Positions 5,101-37,900 of a stretch of DNA of 64,000 nucleotides are shown one piece after another. The stretch is from positions 21,638,001 to 21,702,000 of the forward strand of contig NC_135767.1 in assembly GCF_052425735.1 (NCBI RefSeq), in the 5' to 3' direction. A program made the position numbers and the translations under genes. The DNA is from Oculina patagonica. Its lineage: Eukaryota. The number at the start of each line of letters is the position of its first letter. The stretch's first letter is position 1. A model generated the notes under the pieces. The model ran no database searches. It saw nothing but the letters and a program-made list of their open reading frames with translations, and had not been told where the DNA came from.

Positions 5101-8100
5101 CATTTTTCAATGAATTGACCGGTTCGGTAAGTCTTGATGAGATATTTTGAAAGGTCCTTTAAAATACTTAAATGACGGTTTTCGCTATCCTTTTATATAC
5201 TACAACTCGTGAAAGCCCAGTGCTTTTACATACCTACAGCCTGAAAAAAGTTGCCCTTTTAGGCAGAGCCTCCCAGCTCTAGGGATTCTCCCTTGAGCGG
5301 GAGGCTGTAAGCTTACACTTACCAACGTTTTTCTTAACAGGTACAGCCAAAACATAACTCTTATGTTGGTTTTGTATCTTTTCTAGACGACAGGATTTGT
5401 TGAGATTGATTTAGCACAACCAAAGGAGAAATGACTTTGTGAGAAAACAAAATCCCCTTCTAAACAAAGCTATGAAAAAGTTGTGTAACAGATACGTTTG
5501 TGATTTTTCACCAGCTGTTGCGTGTTTGCCCAATAATCCTTGCCTAAATGGAGGGACCTGTACGGTAGTTATTGACTGGCCGTTGTTCACATGCAGTTGT
5601 CCCTCTGGATATTTTGGTTATAATTGTGGATTTCCACAAGGTAAGACACGTCGTCACGAGGTAGCCTTTAACTAACCTTTTTGTGTAAATCATCATCGTC
5701 ATCAAAATCATCATCATCATCACAATCGTAATTATCATCATCATCCTCATCATCATCATCATTATCATCATCATCAACATCATCATCATCATCTGTTTCC
5801 TTTTTTAGTATAAAAAAATGTTTCTATTGTCTTGTATTTTTCGTTTTTCTTTTCTCTTGACAATTTATTGAAGGTTAAGCAACATAAATTGCAACACCAA
5901 CAGAAATAAAGTTCAAAAGTTGTTGGAAAATAAATATACAAAATGTTTTTAAATTTCAGATGGCTGCACACAAGTTAACCCGCCCAAATTTCTGGATCAG
6001 TATCTCTTTTTGACAAAGACTTACAAACGCTCAAAGCTAATCAGAAATTGTACTTCTTAACAGGCGACCCGTGTTCAGACGAACCTTGCAAGAATGGTGG
6101 GACATGTACCGTGGCTGATAACTCGGTTGGATCTGAATGTACCGTGGCTAATAACTTGCTTGGATTTGTGTGCAATTGTCCTTCAGAATATATCGGCTTT
6201 GATTGTGGCACTCTGAAAGGTAATATGCACCCTCCTAAAAATGAGACTAAAGTTTTTATGAGTCAACGAGTCATGAGTCATGAGTCAATGAGTCAAATCT
6301 TAAATTAGAGGTATAAATTTGAAAATAGTGCTACCCTTACTAACAAATTAAAGCTAACCGCAAGCAAACCAGAGTGCAACTAACCGCAAGCAAAAAAAAC
6401 TTTCCAATACACCCACTACTCTTCTTGCCACCCACCAGGGGCCAAAAAAAGGCTTCATTAAGGGTGAGACACTCAGACTTCTAAGAACCAACTCCACTGA
6501 TAAATTATTCAACGATAATTAGAATAAATTCAAAACACGCCTCCATGCGAGAGGCTACCCTAAAGCATTCGTTGAAAGAATAACAAGCGAAGTCAAATTC
6601 AGTGAAAGAAAGTTGGCTCTAAAACAGAAAGAGAAACAACAGAAAAAAATTCTACCATTTACAACAAAATTCCACCCGGCTCTGCCAAACATAAAAAACA
6701 TCCTTATGAACAAGTGGCATTTAATTCAAAACCAACCAAAATTGAGAGAAATATTCAAGGAACCTCCCTTAATCTCATACAAAAGGGGCAGATCCCTAAA
6801 AGATATGCTCGTTAAAGCTAAACTTTGATACAGTAACGTTTCCCTCATCACGGAAATATGAGTCGTGTTTGGCCTGTCTACACCTTTTTAGTAAAAATTT
6901 CACGACAAAAATAAAAAATCACAACAATAAATAAAAAATTACCAAAATATTATTTTAGCAGATTATGAGGACTTATTCTATAGGCCAATAGCTGGATTTT
7001 AAAGCATGCTATATATTTTAATCTTCTTGAACATATTTTATCTTAGCTTGCTATACCGATCGAAATTCAGTTTAAAAAGATTTGATGTATACTGTACGCT
7101 GTTTTCTCATTTAAATGAAAATTTCAAATCATGTTGATAACTAACTGAATTAGCCTTGCAGAATTTCGCCAAACGGATCAATAAACTGTGTGTGAGTCAC
7201 ATGACATTCTAATGCCAGCGAACTGTGCACTTGCTCCTTAATTTACCGAGGCATCAAATCGCGCGCTGAATTTGCCGCAAAATCTTAAGTTCTAGTAGCT
7301 CACTATGTTATTAATATTAACATTATTTTGCTCTAAAAAGGACCAATTTTGTTTAAATATACATGTATTTCTCAACAGCGTGTTCCCCCAATCCTTGTGC
7401 AAATAATGGCAGCTGTACAGGGGCGACCAACACACAAGGGTTTACATGCAACTGTTCTTCAGAGTACATTGGTGATACATGCGAAAATAAAATTGGTAAG
7501 ACAAGCTTTTTCAGCTCCTTCCAGTTTTCTTGGTTTTGCTGACATTGAACACATTTCAAAGAAGTTTTTTTTTTTTTTTAAAAAAAAAGACAGGTTCAAA
7601 TACAGCAAATTATAATTAGGTTAACGTGGCACAAATAAGTGTGCCTAATTCGTGCATTTCTTATGACATTGGAACAAGGGAACTACTACAAAGACATCAG
7701 ATGCTCAAAACACGCCTCTTTGATCCACGTTCCATTAATTTCTTTCTATATATTCTCTTTATTAAATTTAATTTTTAAGTTTAATTTTATTTCAGTTCAT
7801 GGCAACTGGAGTAGCTGGTCTCCATGGCCTAACTGTAACAAGCCGTGTAATGGCGGAATAAGGACCAGAAAGCGCATGTGTGATAACCCTGAACCAGCAT
7901 TTGGCGGGAACAACTGCACTGGTCCGGCAAATGAGACTGAGCCCTGTAATTTGGACAGTTGCCCACGTAAATATACTTTCCTCTTGTTTTATTTTGCACT
8001 GTCACTGCCATTAGTGCTCTAGTTTATATTTAAAACAAAATTATTAATCTTCTTTTGCAATAAAAAAATGTAAAGAAAATTGAACCATCTCATACAAAAT

Positions 8101-11100
8101 AATAAACATTCGTTTGTTAGCCTGCCCCCCCCCCCCCCCCACCCCTATTGATCCCCACACGTCTTACATTGTAGTAATGAAATTTACAGTGTGTGCAAAG
8201 GAACGAGCATACGTTCATTATATTGCACTCGTGTGCAGGTTATAAAGTCGTATAATCATAGGCGTACGGGCACCTTCGGACCTGGGGGGGCGGAGACCTA
8301 ATTGCCCGAAAAAAAAAATGACATGCATTGAAAGCCGAATAAAAAGGCATTTAAAATGGACAATGAAACGTGCATTGAAATAGTTGTGTACAAACCTCAA
8401 CTTGCCTGCTTGCTTTAAGGAAATAAACGATAGTTTTTTTCATTAATTTCGTGGTGTTGCCCGAAGATGTCAATGCACCGTATCTTTTTTTTCTTCGGAA
8501 ATAGGTTATTTATCCACTCCTGAGTTCAGCAAAAATTAACGTATTTTCGGGCAGCCAATTTACATTCCCTCACTTGAAAGATATGTAAAAGCGTGTCAGG
8601 TAAATGGGTTAAAACATTTCGTTGAAAGTTTTGAGCTAGCCCTTACGACTTAACTTAATAACATTTGAGTCAAAGCACTAGCTTCATCACATCTGTAACA
8701 ACTTTTGTTTCAAGGTCTTAGGCTGCGCGCAAACGATCGAGCTATGGAGAATCCTAACTTCTGGTCACCTTCGCCAATTTCCTTCTTACTTCAAGTGATT
8801 GTAACTAAATCAAACTGTGGGGTAACACAAAATTTGCCAGAAAAATCGAACGGGATTATAGCAATTTGCGAGAGGAAACGAAAACATACATGAGAAATCA
8901 GTTAGACTTTTGAACCACAAAGTTATATTTCCAATACTTTTTTCTGTTGATGTAATTCGTTTTGAACGTCATGTTGAGATTTGTCGGCTTATTTTCTATT
9001 TTTTTTCTCTAGGCTTGTTGCCCGAATTCCAAGCATTTTGCCCGAAACATTTCATCCCTGGGGGGGCTGCAGCCCCCCCCCCCCAGACCCTCCCCCCCCG
9101 TTTCGTACGCCTATGCGTATAATACTCAAATGACGTCACACATTTAAAAAGGTTTGCCATATTTAGTTTGCCATCAAGAAATCTCCAAAATTGATTTCAA
9201 CAGATCGAGAAAAACATAAAGATAGATAAGCTGTGTAAAGGAAATTCCTCATAAAAAGAAAAATATCACTCAAACAGAAATTTGATTTATTTTAAGCGGA
9301 AGAGATAAACTATAAGGTCAAGCTGACAAATGACGCCTGGAATGATAATCTAGCCAACCCAGCAAGTCAACCTTATATTGAGCTCGAGGACAAAATCAAA
9401 CAAGATGTAAGTTGAGCGATCTTGATTCACTTTTCTTTTCCTGCTCACTTCACTTCACTTCACTTCACTTCACTACACTTCACTTAATTTCGGACCACTG
9501 CACTTTTAACTGCACTTATCTTATTTTACTGCACTACACAGCATTTTACTGTACCCCACTACACCTTACTACACGCCACTGTTATTCACTGCATTGTGCT
9601 ACACTGAGCTGAAATATAACTTAACACTAATAAAACTAATAATTCAAGTGATTTTACAGGAATGTTTGAATGATCTAGGCATATGAACGATAAATATTGT
9701 CTATTCCAATTATAGGTGAAGGATTTCTACACGAAGAGGAATTATAATGTTATTGTGAAGGTCTTAGAATTCAGGTAATCCTGCTGAAAAATCCATTTTT
9801 CGAATAAAATTTTCTCACTGATGAAAGGTCTTTAGTTAATTAACTTTGTAAAAAAAAAAACAAATTTTAAGGTAGAGGTTTCGTAACTATATTTCCTTCC
9901 TATTCACTCCTTCCTTTCTTTTGTGATGGAAATTGTTCTTTTATTTTCATCCATTAATTTTTTTGAGGAAAATTTTAGCGGATTTCCCAGCGGCCCAAAC
10001 GCAGAGCAGAGCCCCATACCCATAGAAAATTAACAGACCCATGCTTTTGGTTTTTCATGGTCATCATGGCTAGCGGCATGGTTCGCGGGCGCGTGCGACG
10101 ACGTCGCCCCAACATGGCGCCCCCATACTCCAGAAATAGGTTTAAGGTTATGGTTAACGTCAGCTTACATCTTTAATATTGGACATCCATGTCATGGTCA
10201 ACTGACAGCTGTCAAACCAAGGTATCTGCTGACCAATATCACATGACCATATGGCGAGCTCACATATAGAACTCATCGAGGTCGCATGTTTTTTTGAAGT
10301 TTACCGCTGACTTAGTAATGGTTTACATTGGATCGCGGGCTCAAGTGCTAGATTTTTCCTGTTATCGGTCAGTAAATTCGGATTTACGAAAGGGGCGAAG
10401 TAAATAATCGGAGAGCTCCGCTTTTAGGCTTGGCTAAATCTATTGTGAGATATTTCCGACTTATCATAAAAGTCTCCAAAGATATTTTCCCTGATTCTTT
10501 CCATTGTTTATAGGGAAGGGAGCATCATTTCCAGTTTCAACGTGACCTATTCTTCAGTAGACTCGTTTCAAATTGTCTCACTTCAGGAAGAAATTGCTGG
10601 TGGATCCTTAGTTGATACACCAGCTGAATTACTCGACATCACAACTACTAACGGTACGTGAGAAATGATTTATAACAACCTCAAGGGATTCATATAAAGG
10701 GAAACCCCTAAAAGGCACCATAATGTCAAATTCTTTTTCGTCCTAAGAAGTACCAATTCTTTGTAACAAACCGCCTCTGTTGATACACCATTTGAGAACA
10801 GTACGTAAGTAAAGATTTATAACAACTCCCAGGGATTTCATATAAAAGGAACCTCTAAATGGTTTTAGAATATCAAATTCATTTTCACCCCTAAGCAGTA
10901 CCATTTTCTTACAAGTCGCTCCTTTTAATACAACCTTAACATCACAACTTTTAAAGGCATACGAGTAAAGATTTATAATAACCCTCTGGGGTTTCAATTA
11001 AAAAAGAACCCTAAAAGATACCGGGAGTTCGAATTCCTTTTCACCCCCAAAAGTTGCCAAATCTTTCTGACGATTCGTTTCTGTTCATGCACCAGTTAAA

Positions 11101-14100
11101 TTAGTTAACACCGCAACTTCTAGCGGTATGTGAGAAACGATTTGTTAAAATACCATAAAAACACTAACTACACTACGAAAATGTGTAAATATATATTCCT
11201 ATAATACCCTTTAAACGACTCATTTGTTATAGATTTCCACGCAGATTGAAGACTTAATTCGCATTTTAGAGGCCATATGTTTTTTTAGTTTGAAAACTGG
11301 AACAGATGCAGCTATTTTTTATGGTGACAACTGAGGACATAAGCTTATCTTTTTAATTGAGGTCTGAAGGTTCATAGATATCAACATAATGTGCTTTTGC
11401 ATTGTTTTCTTCGCAGTACCAAACGAAGCTCCGGTTATTTTGGAAGTTAAGAGTAACACTTCAACATCAATTGATGTTAAGTGGTCAGAAGTTACAGACT
11501 TCATGCCAATTCTTGGTTACGTAATCGCCTACAAGGAAATCAACAATAAGTTCCACCCAGAAATCCTGAAATCAGTAGAGCCAACACCTCGTGAAGCGGT
11601 GTTGGAAGATTTGAAAGTGTTTACAAATTACACTATACGAGTGTACGCTTTTACTGCTAACGGTAATGGAGTGCCGAGTGAAGCAGCCTCTTTAAGAACC
11701 CAGGAAGACGGTAGGTTTATACCAGGTAGTATTTTAATGTAGTTCATTCTTAGGGTGCGTTTCTTTGGGAAAAATCCAATTCCGGATTCTTGATCCAAAA
11801 ACGGATTTAGCGTTTCTTTACCTATATCCGAAAGTGGATTAATCTTGGATCAATGATCTAAAGAATCCACACTTCGAGTGGATACATCAGATCATATCTG
11901 AATCCGGATTTTTAGGATTCATGATCCGTGCGTTTCTTTGGGAAAGGATTCGAAAAAAGTACCATGGCCCAGCGGTCTTTGCTGTGAAAATACAGGTTCG
12001 CTCTTTGTAAACACTGTCATACGGTAAGTTTTCAGGCGTCATTTCGATCAAAATACAAAAGTATTTCACCATAAAAGGAAACGGTAGCTTGATAGGTATG
12101 AAGTGTCATTTTAAACTGGATACAGGTTTTCTAGAACAGCCACCGTGTGCCTACGGAAGTTGTATCCTTTTGAAATTGTCACGAGTGAAGTTTGCATTCG
12201 CAAACATTCTTCGCTCTCAGATGCTTTCTCGCCACATTGTGCTTGAGGCTAAAGAGGAACTATTTCGACGTGTGATTTTTGTAAAAGATTTTGTATGCCG
12301 AAATTATTTTAGCTAGGATACATTCGACGAAAAATAAATTTGTGCCGATATTTTATGTTCTGTGCGAAATGTGTTTACGGGGTTGTCATGGCAAAAAATC
12401 CATTTTCGGATTCTTCGTTTCTTTGGGAGCAAAGTATCCGTGTGATCTGAGATCAATGATCCAATTTTGGATTTTCCCAAAGAAACGCACCCTTAGTTTC
12501 AGTTTGGGAGAGGTCAATTTAATGATTTTTTGCACGACTATATATAAGACAGCTGATATGGCTGGAAGCCATATCAAGTATTCTTTATAAACGTTAGACC
12601 GGGAAACGTTTTAATCGTAAAATCGTGTAATAAATATTTTATGAATCAACATTGCTATGGACCTTACTTTAATCACAACGAAAATTGTCCAAAATAATCT
12701 GAAAGTTCCATTAATTCTACTTTCCAACACTCAATAATTGTTTAAGAAAACATGATCCATTAATTCTACTTTCCAACACTCTATAATTGTTTAAGAAAAC
12801 ATGATCCACTTGCCCAACCAGTAAGATTAGCCTGTTTTTCCACGCCTGCCGTTTAATGTCTTCTAGCTCACTGTGTTGACTGTGGTTGTCGAGATTGTCA
12901 ATTGGCCTTGGGATTTTGAAATTCGTTTGGAAAGGTCACTCTGTTTTTTCTACTTCCTTATCCTAATCTACTTTTCAATTGGCCATAAAATGCCACTTTC
13001 CTATCTCCAACAGTGCCTAGTCGGCCACCACCGAACAGCATCATTAAATCCACGAGCACAAGTACAATCGACGTTTCATGGGAGCCAATCAGCCAAGCTT
13101 ACGTACATGGAATACTCTTGGGATACGAGGTTAGATATGCAAAGGATGACGGGTCGTCGCCATTAACTTGGGAAACAGTGACACTTGATGCAAACACGCT
13201 TGGAGTGGTTTTAAGTGATCTGGAATATTTTACCCGGTACAAGGTGGTGGTCTGTGCTAGGACTTCCAAAGGATGCGGCGCGGAATATTCCGACATTGCT
13301 TACACATTTGGTGATGGTGAGTAGAATATAAGGGAACATTACTGAGAGTTTCCATTCCGGTATTTACTCCTATGTTTCAGAAATGAGCTTTATTTAGCAA
13401 CATACATGTGTTAGTCTAAGGACGCTTTCCATTTGTCAGAACTGGCCGGCCGGTCCGGTGGTTTTAAATGCGATCTGGGCCTTTTCCACGAGATTTTCCC
13501 ACAAATCCACCATGTCAATGTATAATATTTATGTATTGACTGATTTCACAAAACAAATTTGTCTAACAACGGAATTCTGTCCTCAAATATACCGGTCTGA
13601 CCGTCCAATTCTAACAAAAAAAAATCGCCCTTAGACCTTGCCTTACTGAATGTAATACATGTGGGCCATAGAATGTTAGTATTCAATGAGTAATAAATTT
13701 ATCAGGCGACGTTCTTTGCATTTCTGATAATAGCCCAATTGGTTTAATGTAATAAACGATATGTTGATAGAAACTTTCAATGAAACACTTACCAATTAAT
13801 GTAAGGTATAACCATTGCGAATAGCGTTTGTAAATATTCTTCGCGTTAATTGTATATTGATTGGTGCGTATACTTTTTCTTTCTTCTAAGTACCCAGCAT
13901 GCCTCCTCAAAGTGTGACAGCCCATAATCTCACATCCGCAGTGGGAATAAATGTTACTTGGACGCCTGTCCCTATGGGTCACGTGAACGGCCTTCTTATG
14001 GGCTATTCCATAAAATATCGAAGAATTCAAACAGCTGAGAGGGAAGTGTTTGACACAGAGGAGTATACAGTGACGGTAAAATCAACTGACCTTATGGTTG

Positions 14101-17100
14101 AGCTTCCAGTTCAAACGTACTCGATTTACGAGATTCGCGTGGCTGCCTTTACTCAGAAAGGCATGGGAACGTACAGTGAGTTCGTCTATGGTGGTAAGTG
14201 AATAGAAGTTAAAACTCGTTACGAACCAGACTAGTGTACTGGACTTTGGACCGACCGATCCAGGTTCGGGCCATGGCTCAGATCATTCCGTTATGTTCTG
14301 GGGCAATTAACTTACCTTCTAAGTTTTTTTCTCCTCAATGTGTGTAAAATGAAAGGGTTGAGGTAACCTTGCGTTAGATTGGACACCGCCACAGGGGATA
14401 ATGGATCCCTGTAGATACGCGCGTCGGCCAGATGGGCAAGTCGACTCAAAAGCGACTTTACCATTATCTACCTTACCACGATAACATATAATGTGAACTA
14501 AAATATTAAGTCCTCATTATTGTAATTGATTAATTATAGGAATCAATAAATAGAGAAATAGGAGCCTGGCCCGGGTCATTGTTTTGTGTTGTCGGCCAAG
14601 CAATAGTGCTCCTCTCCACAAGGTGACAAAATGGTCACCGAAAGAATAATGCTGGGCATAACCTTGAGATGGACAGCATCCTAACAAAGGGAAATTGAAA
14701 AATACTCCTGTTGTTTCATGGAGATACGCAGATAAGATCCGGCCCGATCGGCACCTTAAGACAAACGTAAACCTTCATTTATCTTACCATGTTTACGCGT
14801 CATGCGAACAAAAATATGCAGTCCTCATAATTGCAATCGATTATGAATGAATCGATTTCAATTTGAGATATCGTAACCTTTGTGTATGTGATTCTTTTCT
14901 TCTCCATAGAAACCTGCCGTTGCCCAAAAATCCTCTACACAAACTATTGGTCGAATTTTCCATATCTTAAGGTGAACGACGAGGACAATACACTAGAAGG
15001 AGTACTTAGTAGAATTGTCCCAGACATGGTGCATTATGCCTGTGGGATATGCCCTGCACACGGCGATACCTTCATCGACATAACTACAAACGGCAAGGAA
15101 AAGCCGTCCGCCAAGAAAAGCGTCTTAGAAGTACTTCGCGACATGGATGACGTTCCACAGATCAGCTTTCCTATCTACGGCAACAGATACATCGAAACGT
15201 ACATGGGGGAATATGCGTACATCAATCTTGTGGAGTCCCCTGGTGTGGCTTTTATTGCCGCTAAGAGGCCCCCTGGAAAAGCCGCTGACAACATGATAAG
15301 CGCGCTAATTGACTGTATGCCTGTTATGGTGCTATCAGCGTGTATGGCTTTTTTATCAGGGTTTATAATTTGGATTTTGGTAAGTCGCTGCTGTTGGTGC
15401 TTACTGTCTTTCCTTAACGAAAATTAATACAAAGTCTGTAACTTTAAAATCACAGAATTGATACGTTGTGCGTGCTTGGCAATGTCATGATGGCCAACCA
15501 TTGCAGTCTTATTATATTATGTTTACGTAATTACCCACGCAGAACTAGTGCCAATGTCAAATATAATGACTGTTAGCAATAGTGGCATTATCAAAGCAGT
15601 ATTAAATAATGGCTTTGTGCCCGGAAATCAGTACTCGCCACTTTAGAAACGAAAATAAATGTGGGACGAGTGTCATCTTGCAAGCGCTAAGGGACGTGCC
15701 ATTTCTTGGGACCAAAAAAAAGACGAGAAGCCGCTTTTTGCCGTAACGGTCCCACAAGCGACTGTAAGTGGCAAAGTGCACTATATTCCTTCGCAACAAT
15801 TGTTATGAACATTTTGACAGTTTAAGACCGATCAACGAGTTGATTACTAATGATCATGTTTCCTTTCAGGACACGAAGTCCAACCCCGATGAATTTCCAG
15901 CAAGGTTTAGCAAAGGTGTGGCTGAGGGATTCTGGTGGTCGTTCGTTTCCATGACTACTGTTGGGTAAGGTGATCAATTTCACTATTTTTATACGAACTT
16001 TGTCATTTGTTCATTTAAATACATGCATAGTCATAGTGATTCCAAATATAGAGATTTTCTTGGATAAAATAGCACCATTAATTTTTACCCATTTTTTTAG
16101 CCGCAAAGTTCGAATCGAAACTTAAATTACCGCTCAGCAAAATATCGAAAAACCAAGTAACGCTGGGAAAGCGTTGGCAGAATTTAAAGCCCGAATTTAT
16201 AGCTTTATCAAAAGATGCTTTTAAATTTTTATGATGTCATTAACTCCACCTGAAGAAGCCTGCAGTACGCCACCAAACTGTTCATTGTTTGTAATATGTT
16301 TTTTTTTTATATAAAATCAGGTGTCAACGTTTCCTATCATTTTCACAGTTAGAGTAAAGCTAATTGTTTGGTTGTTTGTTTGTTTGTTTTTTTGTTTAAT
16401 GACAGATACGGAGACCGGTCACCCCGGTCTATCCCTGCCCGTATTTTTGCTATCATGTGGACACTGACTGGTCTTGTTATCATTGGCATTCTGATTGGTG
16501 CAATTGCCTCGTCACTCACATCTGTTACTGTAGACCATTCCATCATTCTTTATGGGTCAAAGGTGTGTTCAAATTACAAATATGCATGTAAACGTATGTA
16601 AGTCTTAGTGTGAAGACGGGTAAATAATAGAAACAGTTCGTTCGGACACTTAGTCTGAATTGAATTATAAGCATTTGTATGTAATGGAAGATAGATTTGC
16701 AACAAACCGCTACCGAGAAAAATAATAATCCTTTTTAGAGTGAAACAGAGCTCCTGACGGAAGAATAGCTATCTTTTATAAGTCTCCCAGAGTCTCAACC
16801 ATCCTTAACGTTTTTGGCAAGTTTATTTTCTTTTCTTTTTTTTCCTTCTTTGGTGATTGCATCAGAGTTTCTTTTAAATGAAGAGATGATCCTCGCAGTT
16901 ATGAACACAACTAGTTGCGAAAAGAAAGCCTGAAAAAATCAGGCTTTCCGGCACTAGCCGGTGAACCCTGACATCTTCGATACCGGTGCAGCGCTCTAAC
17001 CAATTGAGATAACAAGCCAATGCAATGGTCATGTTTGGTTCGTAATATACCCGGGGAAGATGAAGATGAAATTATGAATATATGAAGAATAAATGAAGAC

Positions 17101-20100
17101 ATGATCCTCGCAATTATGAACGAGGATCATCTCTTCATTTATTCTTCATCCGCAGTTCAAATATATGATTTCATATATTCATAATTTCAGAGTTTCTTTT
17201 ATTAAATTTAGATTGGAGCCATTCATAACTCCACGGAACATCAAATCGCAACCCTTAAGAACGCAAGAGTGAATGAAGGTACGAAATATTAGACTTCTTT
17301 TAGACAGCAGTGTTTTTATAAGAGGACTCAAAGCAAAAATAATCAAAAAAGTGATTATTTGTGTTGGTTTTAATGGGATGAAATTCAATGGTTGAAAAAA
17401 AGGCGAAAAAATGTAGGCGCAACCAAATGTACAAACCCCAACCTCCCCCTAACAAGGGCACTTTAGGTTTACGGTAGTGTGGTGTCCATCTATGAATTTT
17501 TAGCATTGGGTACTTCATAAAACTTAATCTCTCCGGATCCCTTTAAATTTAACTCAATTGAAATTTCTATTTTATTACTTGTTTCTTCATTAACATATTG
17601 CCATTACAAATATAAAATATCGGATTAGGTTGTGAACCCCTCATTCTAGCATATATGAATGTATTTTTTTGCACGGCACCTTAAGGAGATAATAGTGGTG
17701 CTAAAAAAGATAGAATACATAGAGCCTCCAATTATAATCTTCCCTTGACTTTTACCGCCTGCTGCTTGAAATCCTTAAGTTCTGTTTCATTTTTTGTCCG
17801 CAGATCGAAAATACAGAAACTTTGAAGAAATACGAACAGCACTAGAAGATGGAGAAATCGATGGAGCCCTGCTAGACACATATGTTGCTGCAGAACATAA
17901 AGAAGAGATCTTTAGCGATAAGATATATGTCAAAGAGATCATGGACCGGCCATTTGGTTATGGCGTGGTGCTGTCAGGTGCGGCAAGGAATGTGGAACAA
18001 AGATGTCGGGATTATATTGACATGCAAATACGCGAAATATTTGATATCATCCAGAATACTACAAAGACACTTGACGTAAGTTTCTTGATAAGATCTGTGC
18101 TATTCCAGTAAGAGGTTGGTTGGAGGGTATTACGTCTCCGCCGTCACATTAGTTTTTTATCTATTGAATCATTTTTCAAAGGTAGAACATTGTCACTTAA
18201 CTGAATCAATCGACAAAACGAGCTTTACGATGACTATTGTATTTGAAATTCACCTAATTTTATCTTATTTTAAAGTTTTTTTCTTTGTATTTAATTAGTA
18301 TTTTTATGACTTTTATTTATTGCAATTACTTATCTTTTCACTTCATATTTACATGTAACCTTTACTAGTTAACCGTTAACTAGCTTATTATTCCACTCTT
18401 ACGTCATTGGACCAATCATGGTCAAAGGAACACACAAAATATGGCACGCTCTTACACACTAGTATTCCGTTGTAGACTGTAATGCTCCATTTTGGAATTA
18501 AGAAACACGAAAAATGTACTTGAGTTCGTACAATAACAAATCCCGTCATTATAGTCCTTGCTCTGTAAAAGGCCAACCATGCTAGTTGAAATATTGGCCA
18601 ATGAATACTACTTTCCTTTTTCGTAGTTGTGCCAGCTTTGCAATTAATTTGGTTATATGTTTTTTTTTTTGGTTTTTCTTATACTCTATTGAAATGTTGG
18701 TAGCACAGGTTTACATCTTTTTCCTGTCTTTCCACAGCCGGCCGCCCCAGATGAGGAAGTGGAAGAAAGTACAGGACTGTTCGATGGTTCCTCAGATATG
18801 TTTTTTATGGCCATGGTGGTTCTGCTTGGTATACTGGGAGTAGCTGTCCTTGCAGGAATTTCCTATCAGTTTTTGATATTTGTTCCCCGAAAAAAGAGAG
18901 GTAAAGAAACAGTAACGACTTGTGATGGATCGGGACCGCAGTAACAGAGAGCGTCATGGCTTTACTACAAGAAAAATATCATAAGTTCAGAATAATATCT
19001 TAATATACGAATTTTCACATTAGCTTGCGTGTCAACACACGGTTTCCATTAGTCCAGTCGCTGTACTCTTCCTATCCAGCATAAAATAGGGGTTGAACCC
19101 AGACGGCAGAAGTTGTGGATATCTTGTGCTCGTGCTCAAAACGACCCAATCAAAAATGGCAGAGGAGGGTGGCGTAACTTACTTGGGAGGCGCGTGCTAG
19201 ATTAAAACTTGCTCTCTCAAACTTCGGGTTCAACTACACAACCCAGCATGCGACCAAAATGCAAAGAAAACTGTCGTTCAAACTTTCGTCTAAAGCTAAT
19301 TCAATTAACATGTACTAAAGCCAGAAGTATTGGAACAACTCCGAACACTCTTAAAAGGGCAACCCTGATCATACCTATAGTTAATTGTTTACTATTGGGT
19401 AGCTCACTCGTGAAAAACTCTACCGAGTGGGTTTTTATTAGTACCGGAATTACGCGATCTGTAGTTGGAGAATAGCGATTAGTGTTTCTGACCGTTAGCT
19501 TTTAGTGAATACTGGCTTGCACAATTTGTTTTAAGTTAATACGGTGTTCCTGCTTCAGTGGATGGTCCCGTAGTTGAGTTCGCCTTCTGGCGCGCACGTT
19601 TTCAAAATTGCCGCCCTAAATGCCCCCCCCCCCCCCATTTCTTTCTTTTCCTTTGGGGGGGGGGGGTGGCGATGGCTGAGTTCTGAGCATAGGTATCCAA
19701 GTCATTTTAGAATCTGTCTTCTCCGGCCTGTTTGCGACCTCCAAATAGGGAGGAGAAGGAAGAGTTCAGGGACTGAACTGGGTTGCAATTTTACCGTCCA
19801 ACAGCTGTCGGGTAACTGAAATGACCAAATACAGCAGCTCCTAAAAGGTGGTTATTACAAAGTTAAATCCACAGTTCAATCCCACTCACACCCCCCTCAC
19901 CCCCCCCCCCCCCCCAACCGCCTTCTAGCTTGTACGTCGTACTGTTTAGACCCGTACGCACGCTGTTGAATCGCGCCTAACATAATTTTTTTTTAGTCTT
20001 CTTGGCAACGCTTCACAGCTAATTGCTTCAATCATATTTTTTTTCAGTTGAAACGTTGAAAGCCTCCGCATCGCAATATGCTTACAAGGAGGCCCTCGTT

Positions 20101-22899: not shown

Positions 22900-25558
22900 A
22901 TTGCTTAAAAGCCGCTGGGGTAGCCCAGTGCATTCTGGGATGGATTTAGTTCGTCCAGATCGACAGGATATAATTTAAACATGCAAGCAATTTTTGTACT
23001 GATACAGCGTAGCAATAAATAAAACAAAACAATATCCTCTGCTTGTTTTGTTTGTTTGTAGTTACAACTTTGGCTTAAGAAGAACTCCAAAGTCTTGTGA
23101 TGGTGTCATGCTGTTATATTTTGTGCAATTATTTTCGCTCATTGGAGTTCTGCAGGGATGTTTGGGGTGAAAAGGTTGACTTTGTAATCGATGAACTAGT
23201 GATCTCACGCCGTCACATCAAACAAGGGTCTTGCTGTGTACATTATCTGACAGGGATTCATTCGGCTTATTATTGCTTTTTTTGCTGCAAAACTACTCGA
23301 AGCAATAAAAATTGAGGGAAACCGTTTTTGACTTTACTGACTATTTTACCTTCGCTGGCTATGAGCTACTGTCAAAAAAGGAGTGAAATCCCTTTATAAA
23401 ATGGCCTTCACCCTTTCGCATTGATATAAACTGCTTTATACCCCAATGAAACCTTTTCAGAAGTTCTCGAATGTTGCAATTTACGCATGTGAATAATATT
23501 CATACCCAGATTTAGCTTTTTGTACCTCAGTAATACGTAATAATATAATTGCACACAAAATTTTACTTGATAAATTTCAACTATATGGCTAAATTATAAA
23601 GCCTTAAATGCCCAGAAAACAGGTGATTATATCAGCTAAATGTTTCCTTGCACTAATCTCTAAAAATAAAACAGATGATTTATTAAACAAGCTACCGCAT
23701 ATTGTGCCCTTGGTAAATGTTTATATAAATTCCGACCTATATAGGAGACTGTTTTGTTTTCAAATTTGTAATTAAAGCAAGGCCGTGTTTTTTATACAAT
23801 AGTTGACCACGATTATTAAAATAAGTGCATGTCTAGTGCAGAAATTAAAGCAACACCAAATAAAGAAGAAAGTTAAAACAACATTGACAAAAAAATGGTA
23901 AAATGATACAAGTTTATCCACGCAATTATTGAATTATTCACCATGAACGTACTTCTCTAGAATGTTGTTTAAAAACAAACGGAAGTCAAAGAAGTTGGTT
24001 TATTAAATCCATTAATATTAAAGGCCTTGAATTGCTTCCCTGGCATTTCGTTTAAACACCAAACTGTTAACATGCAAAACGCTAAGATGAAGGTGGTTCA
24101 GGTAATACTATAAAATTAACTTGGTAAATTCTGTTTGCTTTTACCTGATACACTAACACCGTATCAAATTCTACCCTGCAGCTTTTCTTGGCTTTACTTT
24201 GCCTTCTTTCTAACTTGGAAGTTAAAGGTATTTACATCTTTATTGTTTTTCCTTAAAAAATAATTGTCAATTCCGGAATCTTAGTCCACCAAATATGTTT
24301 CTTTTAAACAAGAAAAAAATGGTTTTATACACTTCGTGAAAATTGAGTGCTAGTTAAACAGACAGAGGAATTATAGGAATTGAGATTCGTATCCTTAAAT
24401 TCACGGTGGCAATTGCATCTTGGTTTAAAAAACCAAAGTGAAAATAAAACCGATTAAATCTTCAGGTTCCAAAATTAATCTTCGATAATAGTTTACAATG
24501 AAAGGTTTACGTAAAATTCTCTACCACGCCTAATCAATTATTCCAACTCCATTGCCCACAAGCTTATTAATTATAACTGACTTTATTTTGGGTTCAAAAT
24601 GTTTGATATTCCCTTTCAATGTCAAGTAGACACTTTTTCTATTATTTTACCCATCTTCCATCTTCTTTATCTTTGAACCATCTTCGATAATCCTTTGCAA
24701 GTATATGAAAGTATTTAGTATTCCTTTTCAACCCGCCAATCCGATATAAAAAGTTTTTTATAAGACGGCATTCTTGTGGAGATCAAGGTGGCGGGCTGTG
24801 AGTCGAGCTGCAGCTTTTGTATTCGACGGATTGGAATTGACTGACGTGCTAAGAATTTGTGGTAAATATTTCTATTACGGTCTAAATTAGCCCAGATGTC
24901 ATTTCAACTAGTAAGATGCTTTGAGGCTTTACAATATATACTTAATAAGATCAGCTATCAAATCGGAATGACGGGCGTGCTATTATCCGTGTTCGACGAC
25001 TCAAATATGTTGCTAAAAGCTTGATGAATGTAGTCAAGGTAGTTGTTACTGTCCATTGTTGTGATAAATTAGCCCAGGACTAGCAAGATGCAAACAAACT
25101 TCTCGAGACTTGACACAGGCACTAGAAATCACCAGGACACCAGTCAGAGAAATACCTCAACCAGTCAAATTTCGTGACCGATGAAATGTGTTCCACCGAT
25201 AAAAATGTATCAATTCTCGTTCGATGATAACATTTCTCGACAAACTCGAATTGTGAACCCGGCAGACAAGACCAATTTTTTTCTTTTCTCTAATGGTGGA
25301 TTTTGATCACAGTAGCTGTGATTATTTGCCATAAAGATGAACACAAAAGATACTTATCTTGATCTATTTTGTCAGTATGGCTTTCAAAAGCAACAAATTA
25401 TTATTCTTTTGTAAAAACGTAACAAACAAAGTAGACGGAATTACAATGATACATTAAACGCACTAGCTAGTTACTTAATTTAAAAGTTGTTGAAGAATGT
25501 AGATTTACAGTAAAACAGGGGTTCATCTGTATTTGTCTAATTTATTCGGCACTTTTAG

Positions 25559-25954
25559 GAAATCCATGTGAACTTAATGATTACAAAGACCTGAACCAAG
25601 GTGATCGTTCAGAGGGCTACAAAGATGCCACAGACAAGTGCGATTCTGACGACCTTGCAGATGAATGGCATTATTGGTACATAGTAACTGGAAACGCAGG
25701 AAATGCCCTTTCTTCTAACAACGCTCCTCAAAAAGATTCGTGCGGAACAAAGGACCGGCTGTATCTCAAGGATGCACATCCAGAATTCAGTGACGGCGAG
25801 GTCACTAAAAGAGTGTGCGTAGCTCAAGGAAATACGGCATGCGCTAGTGAATTGGATATACAAATAATCAACTGCGGTGCTTTCTACTTGTACAAGCTCG
25901 TTGATCTGAGGGACTGCTCAGGCGATCCATGGCGTTACTGCACTAATGGAGAAG
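25559..25954 (+). CDS. Uromodulin/GP2/OIT3-type D8C domain exon (absent from ORF track)
   Basis: Phase 1-1 exon: [17 protein letters not shown]...CDSDDL...WYIVTGNAG...SCGT...[18 protein letters not shown]...[14 protein letters not shown]...RYCT; 8 Cys; motif pattern matches the UMOD D8C domain. Confidence 0.8.
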
Positions 25955-28900: not shown

Positions 28901-31900
28901 GAGCGTTTTCCAAATGCGCACATCAAAACTACGTAGGTTACATAAAGTACGTTGTCTGGATTGTCACGCTGGTCGTAGCGGGATCTCATTAACACTAAAT
29001 TTCCCGCTTTTTATCTCGTATCCAGAAATGACAGAAGTTTTTTAAAACATCCTGCGAAGCGGGTCTGTTGGGTGGGGGTGTGACTTTGAATGGAAAAAAG
29101 CTGTAGTATATCAAAGTAAGTTGCCTGAATAACTTTCAGTATAGCGAGCAAGGAGTAACTGTCTGGAGAGCGTTTGAAGTCGGACATGGGAGACTAATCG
29201 ATTAAAGCCAAATTGAAGGTACGTATAGCTTGCACGGCGTACCAGTAATTCAAGATTTTTGGTGTTTTATTTTTTTATTCTTGTAATGCCCAAAAGAAAC
29301 GGTTTCTATTTGTTATTAAATTCCGATGGCTAGAGAAGTTATCTAACATATGGTTACGCTGTAATATTCACAACAAGGTGTTTGGGGAACTCTGATAACT
29401 CTGAAAACTTTCAAATTGCTGGCTGAATGACAACATTTTTAATAGCTGATCTAGTTCCTGAGTTTAAACCCATTTATCAGCACTTTTTGCCTGACTCAGT
29501 ACCGGTAAATGATTGATTGATTGTTTTAGCAAGATATAAAGTAATTAACATGCATGCCTTATATCATCTCAGAAACGAGATTTCAGGTCAGTTGGAGAAA
29601 GTAAATTAATATTTAGAGAGTATTTTCTTTAACTGAGAGGCGCAGTGGCCTAATGGTTAGCGCGCTCGCCTCTGAGTCGAACGGCTCGGATTCGAGCCCT
29701 GGCAGGAGTGCTGCGTTGTGCTCTCTCCACAAGGTACATCTCTCCACCCAGGTGTATAAATGGGTAACAGCAAATTTACTGCTGGGGGTAACCCCGCAAC
29801 GGACTAGCATCCCATCCAGGGGGAGTAGCAATACTCCTAGTCGCTTAATGTAACAGAAACCGGGATAAGCTCCGGCTATTTACGGGCCACTTGGCTCGGA
29901 CACAGACTTTACCTTAACCTTATTTTCTATAATGAATCCTGAGTTTGAAAAAGTTTGTCAACATACAACTTTCAACGGCGCTCGCACTTTTTCCATCGTG
30001 ATTATATTAAAAAATCACTGGTTCACTTGACTCAGTTACTCAAATTAGACGCATGTATTCCCACTGTTGTATGGTATCCTTTACGACGATATGTCTGTTT
30101 CTTGCAGTTCCAAATTACTTGCAAAATTGTTCTTTTGTTGGACAATTTTCGTCTGGAGACTTTGTAAGTGTTTCTCAAGAAAAGTCAATTAAAGTGCGGG
30201 AAAATGATGATGAGCAACCAGCAGTCGAGAAAGACGAGTCCTCGTGCGTACTCCTTGAGTGCCCCGGCCCAATGAAGGTTGCGTAAAGATGTATCAGCGA
30301 CACTCAAGTTTAGAAAAACACCTTCTGTTTGGACATTGTAAGATGGTAGCTGAAAAAGAAACACTTTATGACATTGCAATGAAAAAGTACCACGCCCTTT
30401 TAGCTGACGGAACGAGTGAGGCAGTGTCGGCAACCCCTGATCAAGGCCACACCTTTGAAAGTGCAAGCCCGTTACCCGAAGGCTGGACCTTAAAGACAAC
30501 TAAAGAGGCTACTCGTTTCAACGACGCCCAGAAGAAATACGTAGAAGAAAAATTTAACCTTGGGCAAGCAACAGGCCAAAAACAGGATCCCAACGTCGTA
30601 GCACGCGACATGCGATTTACAAGAAAAATGGATGGCACGAAGCGTTTTAAGAGTGATGACTACCTCAAGCGCGCAGCAAATACAGGGGTTTTTCTCAAGA
30701 ATGGCGGCGAAATTGCGTCATGGTCAGCTGGATCTTCTGGAGGAAGGCATCAGAGCAGCAGAAGAAGAGCAGATGATGGACGACACACGGCAAGCTATAC
30801 TTGAACAAGTGCAGTTGCTAACCAATCGTATATGACAACCTTGATATTTGTGCCATGTATAGGGAAAAGCGGCTGAAGCAACTCAGTATTGCAATACTCA
30901 ATACAATGTGCATTTATTTTGACATTTCTACGGAGGGATTTAATTCCAAGCGTAAAGCAGAGTACATTGCTGTTTTAAGTGAGCTTGCCCTCGCTTGTGA
31001 CTGTTGTAAGTGAATGTGAAACTGACTTGTCCCCAGGCCTCTGTGTGTAAGGCGAGAAAAATCTTTTATTGAACGAAGCATGAAACATTTCCAGTACTAA
31101 AAAAGGTTGTGCTTCTGATGTTAATGAAAGTAAGAATAATCAGTTACTGCCTTCAAAAGACAAGACAAAAAAATGCGTGTTTGAAATTACAAGAGGACAA
31201 ACATGCTTCCTTGATTTCAGGATATCTATCATGTTAAATGGAAAAAAATGCATTTACGGAGGTATTTTTCCTACAGTTTGTTAGGTATCTATTTGCCCAA
31301 GATGCGAATTAATTTATTGAAGGCAAAGATAACACAATCGTGTCAGGTGGAAAGAAAAAAGGAAAACTACACTAAAGATGATTATCATTATAAATATTAT
31401 CCTGTGTCGCACCTTTTCAAAATAAAGAACTGAGGACAAGAAAAGTGACCGAAAGCAAAGAGTTTTTTCATTGTTAAAGCAAAATTTCCACTATAACTTG
31501 CTTTATAGCCTTTAAATTTAGCGTTTCCTTTTTTTTGAGTCGTTTTTATTTACACATTGTACAAAACCCGTCCCCCACCTCGCCAGTCTTCAAGGGGTGC
31601 TTGGGTACCCTGTGTCTGTGGTTAATATGTAACTTGAGAACATTCGCCGACAGTTTATGAATTTGTAGAATGGACGCATTTACGTTACCACTTCTCGTCA
31701 AAATAGGCTCGATAAAGGTAGGAAAACGTGTAATTAATTTAGTTTACTATCTATTCTTCGATTTTTAGGGAAGATTTATCTCGGTGGTGATTTATAAACT
31801 GATATTTTCATTGCGTGCATTGTCGGACCTCGCCAAACCGCCAGATGTAATTTGCAGAATTTGTAACTCAAAATAAACGTGCTAAGAATGTTCATTTGAG

Positions 31901-34900: not shown

Positions 34901-37900
34901 AGAACGATTAATCCCAAATTGTATCGCTAGTTGAACAATTTAAAAAAATTAATTGTATCGCTAAAATTCGAGGTTAGGAAGTCTTTAGGAACCTTTTTTA
35001 AAAAAAAGTAATTTTGGTAAAAAGGCGCTTCCCCCCCCCAAAGTTTTGCGCCAAAAAACGCGGATACACCACCATCACAACTCGTTCCCAGTCTGTTGTG
35101 GTTTCAGCTTTCTTTCTTTCTTGAGGAATCGTCAAAGATCGATCTAAAAACGATGTACTTTGAAGGCCCTAATCGACAAATTTACTCTCGAACAGAAATG
35201 AGGGAAAAAGTAAACAAGTAGACATTAAGATTTTACGATTTTCTTTTAAAAATAAAGCTCACTTTAATCGACTTTCAAAGCTCAATAAGCGACGCTACGC
35301 CTGAGGGACGCCTAGAACAATTTAAGTCGCATAAACACAAAAATTTTGCTGAATTCGGAAGCTTGTAGACCTTGTATTACGGTAGCATTATTATTTAAAG
35401 GATTTTTTCGAAACAGTAAGGGATTAATTGTATTTGTGACCAGATCGAACTATTTCTAATTTCCACTCGTGACATTTACTAAAAAGTCCGATCTGTTCAC
35501 TCATACAATTAATGCCTAATTGTTTCTCGAAAGCACACGTTTTCCTATACTTATAAAGGCATAAGTCAATTGACCCCCCCCCCCCCCCCGACCTCCGAGA
35601 CATAGCAGGGATTAAATACGTCCAAAGCGGGGATTTAACGCACATTTTAGTGAATGGATGGTAAGGTAAAACGGCGCGTTGACCTCCGGTGGGCGGTGGA
35701 TTAAACAAATTGTCAATAGACCAGGGCCGTAGAACGGTGAGTTAACATCACGCGAACACCTGAAGCGGGGACGACAGCCGGGGATTTAACATGAAGGACT
35801 AATGTTTTCCGTACATATACGTTGAGAGGAAGCTGATTTAAGAGCGCCACTTCTCCCTTGATTAAGTCTTTTGTGACGCCTGGTGGGTGACACGAATAGA
35901 AATTCGTGTATTGAAACGTCTCTGTAGGTTTGTAATGTTTCCGCACGTCAGGAATAGACCCCTTTGTGGAATCTGTCACCCTGTACGCTATGTCCTAGAA
36001 AGTAGTTCCTGTTTCTAATATTGTAGCCGTGAACTTTATCGTAGGGTGAAAGCTGTTTGCCAGTAGAAAGTATTTTGTCTCTGCTTGTGTCCTACGTTGA
36101 AAATTGTCGTCAATAAATCGCTCCCAAAGGATGGGTTTATTGCTACTTTGTCTGAGTAATTCGTTTTCTATTTTGACCATGAAGAAGTTAACAGAAGCTA
36201 CGGTCATTTTCAAGGCCATGGCTCTTCGATGGGTTTGAAGGTAATCTTTTCCGAGTTTTCTTGAAGGATCAGAGTGAGCATTTCTCTTCATAACATGGTA
36301 GGAACGGGAGGGTTTCCTTAATAGAAATTCTTCGTATGTTTTGCATACAGTTCTAAATAACCACTTTTTGTGGTATGTTAGTGTACTGGTGACTTCCATA
36401 AAGACAAGGAACTCTTTCTTAGCAGTTTATTCTTCTCAATAAATTTAATTTTTTTGTGGTTTTTTTTTTTTTGGGTGAATTGTGGTTGAAAAAATAATTT
36501 TGCTTTCCCTTTTGGTTTTTTTTTTTTTTTAAAATTTTTTTTTTAAAAAAAAAAAAATTAAAGAAAAAAAAAAAACAATCCCTAAAAAAAAAAAAAAAAA
36601 AAAAAAAAATAAAAAAATTTCTGAAAGTTGTTTTGAGTTGTTTCTTTCTTTGGTTCGGATGCCTCTGCTATGCAAGGCTTTTAACAGACGTCTTGGCCCC
36701 GCGGAGGGGTAATCAGCCGTCTTTTAACACTTGGTAAACGTTCATTCCTCAACCTCGTCCCGGTTGTAAATTCCTCGCTGACTCCCAGGGGCCGGGGGGC
36801 CGGGGGGCCGGGGACCGGGGTTTCAATTGACTGATGCATCATACTGACTGTGTCACGGATTCTAGCCAAATTTAGGCATTGGAAATGACCATCAAATTCG
36901 TTGAAATATACAAATAACCTCTTAAAAAGTGTAGGAACATTTCAATAACACACCAAATACAAAAGAAGGTACGGATGGCCAAAAGCGACGAAGATTGAAA
37001 CGGATTGCGGTATTTTGGGGCTGAACAGTTTTCAAAGTTAATCTTGTTTGCTTGTAACTTGTAACTATGGTTTTGTCATTTAGATCGATAGAAGTAATTT
37101 CTTTGCAAACATAAAGTTTCATATTTGGCGAAACTGAATAAAATAAACTTAACTCAGCTGTGACACAGTCCCTTTAAATCGTACATTTTCATTTTCCGTT
37201 CCCAGTCCCTCCAGGTTGTCAAGGAGCTCTGGGCGTGGAAAGCGGCCAAATCCCTGACGGAAAAATGGCTGCAAAATCTTCTGAGAATGTTAACCTAACC
37301 GGCCCCAATCGGGGCAGGCTGAACTTACAACAAGAAGGATCCAAATCAGGGGGATGGGTTGCTGGAATCGTCAATACAAATCAATGGTTTGTTGTTCGTT
37401 TTGAGAATGATTTTACCATAGTAACAGCAGTGGCAACACAAGGGAGGCAAGATGAAGAGGAGTGGGTTACTAAATACCACTTACAGTACAGGACATTTCA
37501 GAATTTTGCTCATACCGATTACATTGAACCAGGACAAAACACGACCAAGGTAATTAATTAAAATACGATTAACATAATTAACTTCGCCTTCTCCTTCTTG
37601 ATGTTTTCTCCTAAGCCTGGTTCTCATATAATCACCCCGATCCTTTCTATCGCCTCTGTCACTTCAAAACTTTTTCTTGCGATCGGGGCGATTATATGAT
37701 AACATTACACAGACGATCGCTAACGCCTGCGGCGATTGGGGCGTTCACGTCCGCTTGGATCGCCCCTGTTCTATCCTTTTAGCTTCTCTTTCCCTTCTTC
37801 GCCGTAGAACTGCAATAACTGCATGAGAAGATAGGAGGCCACGAGTTTTGCTCTTTCATTGAAGGCTGCCATTGTGTCTAGGGCTAAAATGTTTTTTTTT

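Follow-up and report, generated by a model that had tools for sequence, protein, structure and literature searches.

The stretch of DNA analyzed here (henceforth the window) spans 64,000 nucleotides (nt) of the genome of the coral Oculina patagonica (contig NC_135767.1 of assembly GCF_052425735.1, positions 21,638,001–21,702,000, forward strand). It carries two tandem paralogous genes, A and B, each of which contains three short exons that together encode a SEA domain in the ectodomain of an ion channel subunit. These exons, all on the plus strand, are 110, 59 and 140 nt long and are absent from a plain list of open reading frames (ORFs). In gene A, exon 1 (9297–9406) encodes strand beta1 and most of helix 1, with its first 2 nt belonging to a split Pro codon; exon 2 (9716–9774) supplies the end of helix 1 and strand beta2, terminating in ...VKVLEF plus 2 nt of an Arg codon; and exon 3 (10514–10653) begins with E-G-S-I-I-S and continues through beta3, helix 2 and beta4. 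The Gly and Ser codons (GGG AGC) that flank the predicted scissile bond lie at 10518–10523 and correspond to G63/S64 of our family alignment. The equivalent exons of gene B are at 53490–53599, 54537–54595 and 55699–55838, with the Gly-Ser codons at 55703–55708. As detailed below, the domain displays the sequence and structural features of SEA domains that cut their own backbone, so that the channel probably consists of two pieces that are held together non-covalently.

The splicing of these exons is regular: AG is found at each of the six acceptors and GT at each of the six donors, the acceptors are pyrimidine-rich, and the intron phases are identical between the two genes, with the three exons constituting a phase 1-1 module. 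In both genes, a phase-2 intron (9775–10513 in A and 54596–55698 in B) splits the Arg codon ahead of E-G-S. This split Arg lies two residues before the Gly-Ser bond, and hence the start of exon 3 nearly coincides with the predicted new N-terminus in both paralogues. The SEA domain of TMPRSS6 is likewise encoded by three exons (PMC2958558). The spliced product is a stop-free peptide of 102 residues in each gene. That of gene B is identical to residues 1105–1206 of the RefSeq model P0163 (Oculina patagonica LOC144628876 isoform X2, 2083 aa), which maps exon by exon at or near 100% identity to 25489–63774 on the plus strand, the whole of gene B; an N-terminal exon of this gene is found at 25489–25953. 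The gene A peptide is identical to residues 656–757 of the GenBank model P0227 (KAL9960830.1, 3629 aa), which also contains the gene B peptide at 2651–2752. At the level of single exons, gene A exons 1 and 2 match P0227:656–692 and P0227:692–711, and gene B exon 2 matches P0227:2687–2706, each at 100% identity. Thus, two independent annotations use the same three exons per gene. Both peptide junctions that an earlier reading of this DNA from its letters alone (the sequence-only reading) had proposed for the three short exons, namely ...VKVLEFR| in gene A and ...VKVLGFR| in gene B, are therefore right, matching the deposited models. P0227 maps to 861–63774 of the window while its first 187 residues fall to the left, and gene A is therefore cut by the left edge of the window. 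As deposited, P0227 wrongly joins genes A and B, such that a single protein carries both of their SEA domains and both K+ filters. P0163 and P0227 were reached via relatives from Pocillopora and Stylophora and cluster look-ups, as they are not among the 50%-identity representatives.

Comparison of the two spliced SEA peptides reveals 86 identical residues out of 102, with synonymous (dS) and nonsynonymous (dN) divergences of 0.39 and 0.074, respectively. The resulting dN/dS of 0.19, which is comparable to that of the adjacent FN3 and S2 exons (0.06–0.23), points to purifying selection on both SEA copies, and most of the sequence of the intervening introns is unalignable between A and B. On this comparative evidence, the SEA exons are coding and under purifying selection in both paralogues.

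The identity of the encoded domain was established by both profile and predicted fold. The sequence-only reading had placed a SEA domain upstream of the channel and had named a Pfam scan of the spliced peptide and the prediction of a SEA fold as checks; the outcome of each bears it out. Scanned through the deposited proteins, the whole domain scores above the gathering score of the Pfam SEA profile PF01390 (26.4 bits) in both genes: 34.5 bits (E 2.3e-8) in gene A and 32.3 bits (E 1.1e-7) in gene B. Single exons fare less well, with exon 1 alone attaining sub-threshold scores of about 22 bits in gene A (profile positions 4–35) and 22.2 bits in gene B, and exon 3 having no match. An AlphaFold model of the gene B domain (mb87a88ee7064), computed with the 21-sequence family alignment, has a mean predicted local distance difference test score (pLDDT) of 84.6 and displays the order beta-alpha-beta-beta-alpha-beta (E6-14, H29-47, E54-61, E66-73, H78-89, E96-105). 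A Foldseek search of the PDB with this model returned as its top hits the SEA domains of murine MUC16, TMPRSS6, human MUC16 and TMPRSS11D, with template modeling (TM) scores by query of 0.62–0.72. These are all uncleaved SEA domains because cleaved ones are deposited in the PDB as two chains, which Foldseek cannot match as whole domains; their predominance is thus not evidence against cleavage. Against the AlphaFold models of Swiss-Prot, all 30 best matches are SEA domains, among them those of IMPG1/2, MUC1, matriptase, enteropeptidase, ADGRF1, ADGRF5, TMPRSS11D, UMODL1 and TMPRSS6. Hence, going by profile and modeled fold, the domain is a genuine SEA domain. Two N-glycosylation sequons are present inside it.

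We next consider the site at which such domains may cut themselves. In SEA autoproteolysis, the cut falls between Gly and Ser in the beta2-beta3 loop, within the motifs GSVVV in mucins, GSVIV in enteropeptidase and GSVIA in matriptase (PMC2958558), while the SEA domains of ADGRF1 and ADGRF5 have GSVVV or GSIVA (PMC6954182). Cleavage is driven by strain in this hairpin and is abolished upon lengthening of the loop (PMC10327162). Both coral genes possess the G-S-[VI]-[VI]-x signature at the beta2-beta3 hairpin, in the form F-R-E-G-S-I-I-S in gene A and F-R-E-G-S-V-I-S in gene B, and in the AlphaFold model of gene B, G63/S64 are located within a 4-residue turn between these strands (residues 62–65, E-G-S-V). 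We aligned 21 SEA domains of the family, which are 23–88% identical to that of gene B and come from stony corals, Actinia, several Nematostella paralogues, Hydractinia and one further sequence. Across this divergent set, the Gly is the sole invariant column and the Ser is present in all but one; some members read exactly GSVVV (one from Nematostella) or GSVIA (several). On its own, the gene B domain recovered nothing meaningful from PDB sequences; the family profile was needed to reach ADGRF1 and MUC1. With it, the SEA domain of ADGRF1 (7wxu_R) is recovered with E 5e-8 in an alignment that is gap-free from beta2 through beta3. Further, the C-terminal Gly of the cleaved N-terminal chains of ADGRF1 (8hc0_B, FRNG) and MUC1 (6bsb_A and 2acm_A, FRPG) aligns with the invariant Gly of the family. 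The alignment to ADGRF1 and MUC1 being gap-free, the hairpin has the same length as in SEA domains that cleave, whereas the uncleaved SEA domain of mouse TMPRSS11D (2e7v) lacks Gly-Ser and can be aligned there only by allowing two insertions of one residue each. Thus, the claim of a MUC1-type G/S autoproteolysis motif in the sequence-only reading holds up, with GSIIS (A) and GSVIS (B) situated in the beta2-beta3 turn and aligned to the ADGRF1 and MUC1 sites.

The single family member without the Ser is the Nematostella protein P0066 (LOC5501224, 4084 aa; SEA domain 2486–2560), which reads E-K-D-G-K-V-M-A at the corresponding position, with two residues inserted. This paralogue is very long, clusters with members lacking a SEA domain in the tree of the family and may be predicted to be a natural cleavage-dead comparator. 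Taken together, the conservation, register and hairpin length observed in these alignments fit a cleavage-competent domain, and turn geometry alone would be a hard explanation for them.

We then examined the architecture in which the SEA domain is embedded. Pfam matches in P0163 comprise EGF repeats, two F5/8C domains, TSP1 (1052–1102), SEA, three FN3 domains (1207–1506), Ion_trans_2 and a borderline Lig_chan (PF00060; 28.2 bits in P0163 and 31.0 bits in its paralogue P0165, with a cut-off of 30.8). Gene B codes for a signal peptide, an array of EGF and F5/8C domains, TSP1, SEA, three FN3 domains, the channel and a cytoplasmic tail, in that order. P0163 has three hydrophobic transmembrane segments and a pore helix, with the pore stretch between the first two hydrophobic segments and a tail of about 170 residues after the third. 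The pore contains the K+ channel signature TTVGYGD, whose G-Y-G-D columns are invariant in 30 relatives, and searches of PDB sequences with the pore region recovered K+ channels with E down to 1e-11. An AlphaFold model of P0163 residues 1505–1915 (pLDDT 84.3) matches the combined ligand-binding and transmembrane domain structures of AMPA, NMDA and kainate receptors over about 440 columns (E 5e-13 to 1e-11), and the module has the order S1, M1, P-loop, M2, S2, M3. The conjunction of this fold, typical of ionotropic glutamate receptors (iGluRs), with a K+ channel filter justifies the phrase "iGluR-like K+ pore" of the sequence-only reading. The FN3 stalk joins the N-terminus of the S1 lobe, which is where the amino-terminal domains of iGluRs are attached. 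The SEA domain is not juxtamembrane, as the three FN3 domains and the ligand-binding lobe come between it and M1.

The same elements were located in gene A by tblastn, all on the plus strand. The TSP1 exon directly before the SEA domain is at 7795–7965 (approximate limits; 100% identity to P0227:598–654), and the three FN3 exons are at about 11416–11709, 13013–13315 and 13890–14192, in agreement with the three fn3 matches of Pfam in P0163 and P0165. The channel module occupies 14909–18909 and comprises the S1 lobe and M1 (14909–15403), the pore helix and filter (about 15870–15977 and 16383–16590), the S2 lobe (17794–18094) and the last transmembrane segment (about 18687–18909).

Two other kinds of cleavage were considered and rejected. 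A GAIN/GPS module was rejected as no GPS or GAIN family is found among the Pfam matches of P0163 or P0165 (E up to 0.001), and a furin-type, Notch-like cut was rejected as P0163 lacks any R-x-[KR]-R in the stretch from residue 1000 to residue 1520. Therefore, the comparisons with adhesion G-protein-coupled receptors (GPCRs), polycystins and Notch are analogies rather than memberships: of the adhesion-GPCR and polycystin logic invoked by the sequence-only reading, the conceptual parallel survives while membership in the class does not.

The family to which genes A and B belong is widespread in cnidarians, with relatives in Scleractinia, Actiniaria, Octocorallia, Hydrozoa and Scyphozoa, all of which are deposited as "uncharacterized" or misnamed (contactin-3-like, PTPRQ or sidekick-1). 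At least seven cnidarian genera have protein models that include the same contiguous SEA domain. In Oculina, there are at least five paralogues (five or six) in a tandem cluster on one contig of 23.5 Mb (P0163, P0165, P0167, P0220 and P0228). These all carry F-R-E-G-S-[VI]-I-S and share a constant core of TSP1, SEA, three FN3 domains and channel, joined to N-terminal arrays that vary in their EGF counts and in whether they have a single F5/8C domain or two. In a tree built on the channel module, members with a Gly-Ser SEA domain fall in several lineages, namely a hexacorallian clade of 11 with good support, a group of three from Nematostella, the further sequence included in the alignment above and Hydractinia. 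Its deep branches are weak, with some long-branch joins, and it therefore permits no conclusion on the number of times the SEA domain was gained.

Against this backdrop, we lean, with modest confidence, toward the view that the SEA domain self-cleaves during folding, such that the subunit becomes a two-chain protein with its adhesive part attached only through the SEA sheet. We envisage the following course of events. Each gene codes for a type I membrane subunit with its adhesive array (EGF, two F5/8C discoidin domains and TSP1) outermost. As the SEA domain folds in the endoplasmic reticulum, strain in the tight beta2-beta3 hairpin would lead the Ser hydroxyl to attack the Gly-Ser peptide bond, with an N-to-O acyl shift followed by hydrolysis. 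The mature subunit would then consist of two chains held together non-covalently by nothing other than the four-stranded SEA sheet: the first, comprising the adhesive N-terminal part and the first half of the SEA domain, would end in ...FREG; the second would start with S-[IV]-I-S-S-F and comprise the second half of the SEA domain, the FN3 stalk and the channel. Cleaved SEA halves are known to remain associated until force is applied (PMC10327162, PMC6954182). We infer that the coral halves would likewise stay together and that the domain would act as the break point, being the weakest link in series between the binding partner of the adhesive part and the channel. Once the pull exceeds a certain set level, the domain would unfold and the outer chain would be lost, which would cap the force that reaches the stalk and the channel.

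Several points weigh against this proposal. The Pfam SEA scores exceed the threshold by just 6–8 bits. The fifth residue of the motif is Ser here, as opposed to Val or Ala in the proven cases. The geometry of a tight turn can by itself also account for a conserved Gly. TMPRSS6 has a GS-containing motif but its cleavage is unclear (PMC2958558), and the motif alone is therefore no proof. Lastly, the SEA domain is placed away from the membrane, unlike those of mucins and type II proteases, and so the geometry of the fuse differs.

A more far-reaching version of self-cleavage, which we regard as doubtful, would have an iGluR-fold K+ channel primed by autoproteolysis and tethered via the self-cleaved SEA domain to its adhesive ectodomain. 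Load on cell–matrix or cell–cell contacts would then either act via the FN3 stalk to gate the pore, until the rupture force of the SEA domain is reached, or switch it irreversibly upon loss of the outer chain. Were this the case, cnidarians would possess a sensor for contact or strain that operates by adhesion-GPCR logic and whose (K+) output is inhibitory.

The alternative that survives best, though we consider it unlikely, is that the SEA domain folds and stays uncleaved, acting as a spacer or hinge that is glycosylated and links the adhesive array to the FN3 stalk, with the Gly-Ser kept only for the sake of a tight hairpin. Many SEA domains are uncleaved, such as those of MUC16, agrin and perlecan. 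For MUC16, this is documented (PMC4456727), and it is uncleaved domains of this kind that are the nearest whole-domain fold matches in the PDB; the distance of the coral domain from the membrane and its two N-glycosylation sequons would also suit a spacer. Turn geometry would account for the Gly, but not for a Ser retained in 20 of 21 relatives whose overall identity is no more than 23–59%. Moreover, the hairpin is as short as in cleaved SEA domains, as against the uncleaved comparator with its insertions and without Gly-Ser, and the sole member to have lost the Ser has also lengthened its loop, which is the pattern expected upon loss of a cleavage function.

Conversely, cleavage might do more than provide a break point, with dissociation itself being the gating signal. 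Here, force would strip off the outer chain, whereupon either the new N-terminus would act as a tethered ligand for the clamshell or the upper lobe would be unloaded, switching the K+ pore. This is the most interesting reading and the one with the least support, and we hold it to be improbable. In its favor, the stalk meets the channel module at the start of the S1 lobe, the attachment point of the iGluR amino-terminal domain, and the same logic is established for GAIN-cleaved receptors (PMC6954182, PMC10327162). Nevertheless, nothing in the sequence links the SEA domain to gating; the new N-terminus lies three FN3 domains away from the clamshell, which by our own estimate is roughly 10 nm; a tethered agonist derived from a SEA domain is not known in any protein; and the GAIN/GPS domain of the established cases is missing from the Pfam matches. 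Finally, it is highly implausible that the three exons arose by chance or have decayed (pseudo-exons or an annotation artefact) and that no SEA domain is made from them: their shortness, their absence from the plain ORF list and the evident error in the fused model P0227 are outweighed by canonical and conserved splice sites and phases, a dN/dS of 0.19 amid largely unalignable introns and the contiguous domain in several cnidarian genera.

As such, the SEA domain belongs to a known kind that automated Pfam annotation can pick up, and its autoproteolysis is familiar from mucins, type II proteases, dystroglycan and a small number of adhesion GPCRs. Our literature search found no paper placing a SEA domain on an ion channel subunit, and returned nothing relevant on this channel family or on a hair-cell link in Nematostella via the misnamed "PTPRQ" paralogue. 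A SEA domain that has a conserved cleavage motif and is placed on an ion channel subunit thus appears to be undescribed in the literature searched. If the domain is cleaved, the cnidarian channels would each be a receptor of two chains that incorporates a mechanical weak link, in which an iGluR-type gating machine and a K+ pore are tied to adhesion and force. They would offer a testable model for how the load on an ectodomain is coupled to, or limited at, a channel of the ligand-gated type, and would extend to channels the "cut first, pull apart later" design seen in GPCRs, Notch and bacterial anti-sigma factors. If it is not cleaved, the coral protein would add one more SEA spacer in a modular ectodomain.

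Beyond the coding exons, the window contains several repetitive elements. A common stretch of about 470 nt, at 73.5% identity and in opposite orientation, is found in intron 2 of the gene A SEA region (9977–10444) and intron 1 of that of gene B (53977–54437), and is probably an interspersed repeat that was inserted independently. The second SEA intron of gene B contains, at about 54890–55600, a tandem array of units of approximately 40 nt (...gagggaactcaaaat.aaacggagaagtgaaaacat...), as well as a (CATT)n run (54765–54810); a (CACTT)n run is present in intron 1 of gene A (9440–9480). A G-run/CTGCAG/C-run palindrome at 9060–9100, with similar G/C runs near 19574, 27818, 28206, 35424, 39358, 46004 and 53400, looks like a dispersed short repeat and gives rise, on either strand, to spurious ORFs rich in Gly and Pro. 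Further ORFs, probably transposon debris, lie within the long 5' introns of gene B: a pair on the minus strand at 35713–36399 looks like the remnants of a reverse transcriptase, and another, of 181 aa, is on the plus strand at 30259–30804.

In comparative terms, the closest counterparts of the coral SEA domain are those of the adhesion GPCRs ADGRF1/GPR110 and ADGRF5/GPR116. ADGRF1 is the best match of the family profile, without gaps through F-R-x-G-S-[IV]-[IV], and in both receptors the SEA domain lies, as here, in the long modular ectodomain of a signaling membrane protein and away from the membrane. However, theirs is a seven-transmembrane receptor with an additional GAIN/GPS cleavage site, whereas the coral protein is a P-loop channel subunit of the tetrameric type with no GAIN domain. 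MUC1, with its FRPG/SVVV site, is the reference autoproteolytic SEA domain and has the same fold (human MUC1 1037–1151, TM-score 0.72 by query) and the same position of the motif, chains 6bsb_A and 2acm_A ending on the aligned Gly. In contrast to the MUC1 domain, which is juxtamembrane under an array of mucin repeats, that of the coral is set between TSP1 and three FN3 domains and has GSIIS or GSVIS. Matriptase (ST14, GSVIA) and enteropeptidase (GSVIV) are likewise fold matches, with the exact matriptase motif recurring in several members of the family, but these are type II proteases with the SEA domain beside the membrane anchor.

On the channel side, the coral module shares with GluR0 and the iGluRs the order S1, M1, P, M2, S2, M3. 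GluR0 also has a K+ filter (PMC12226733), as does the coral protein in the form of TTVGYGD. Unlike the iGluRs, the coral protein has no amino-terminal domain of their type and instead bears an adhesion-type ectodomain with a SEA domain. At the level of concept, it would resemble polycystin-1, the adhesion GPCRs with their GAIN/GPS and Notch's negative regulatory region (NRR), in all of which an ectodomain is cut in advance and its halves stay together until force is applied (PMC10327162, PMC6954182). In those proteins, the cleavage module is GAIN, or furin acts at S1, neither of which is found in P0163; in the coral channels, the equivalent role would fall to the SEA domain.

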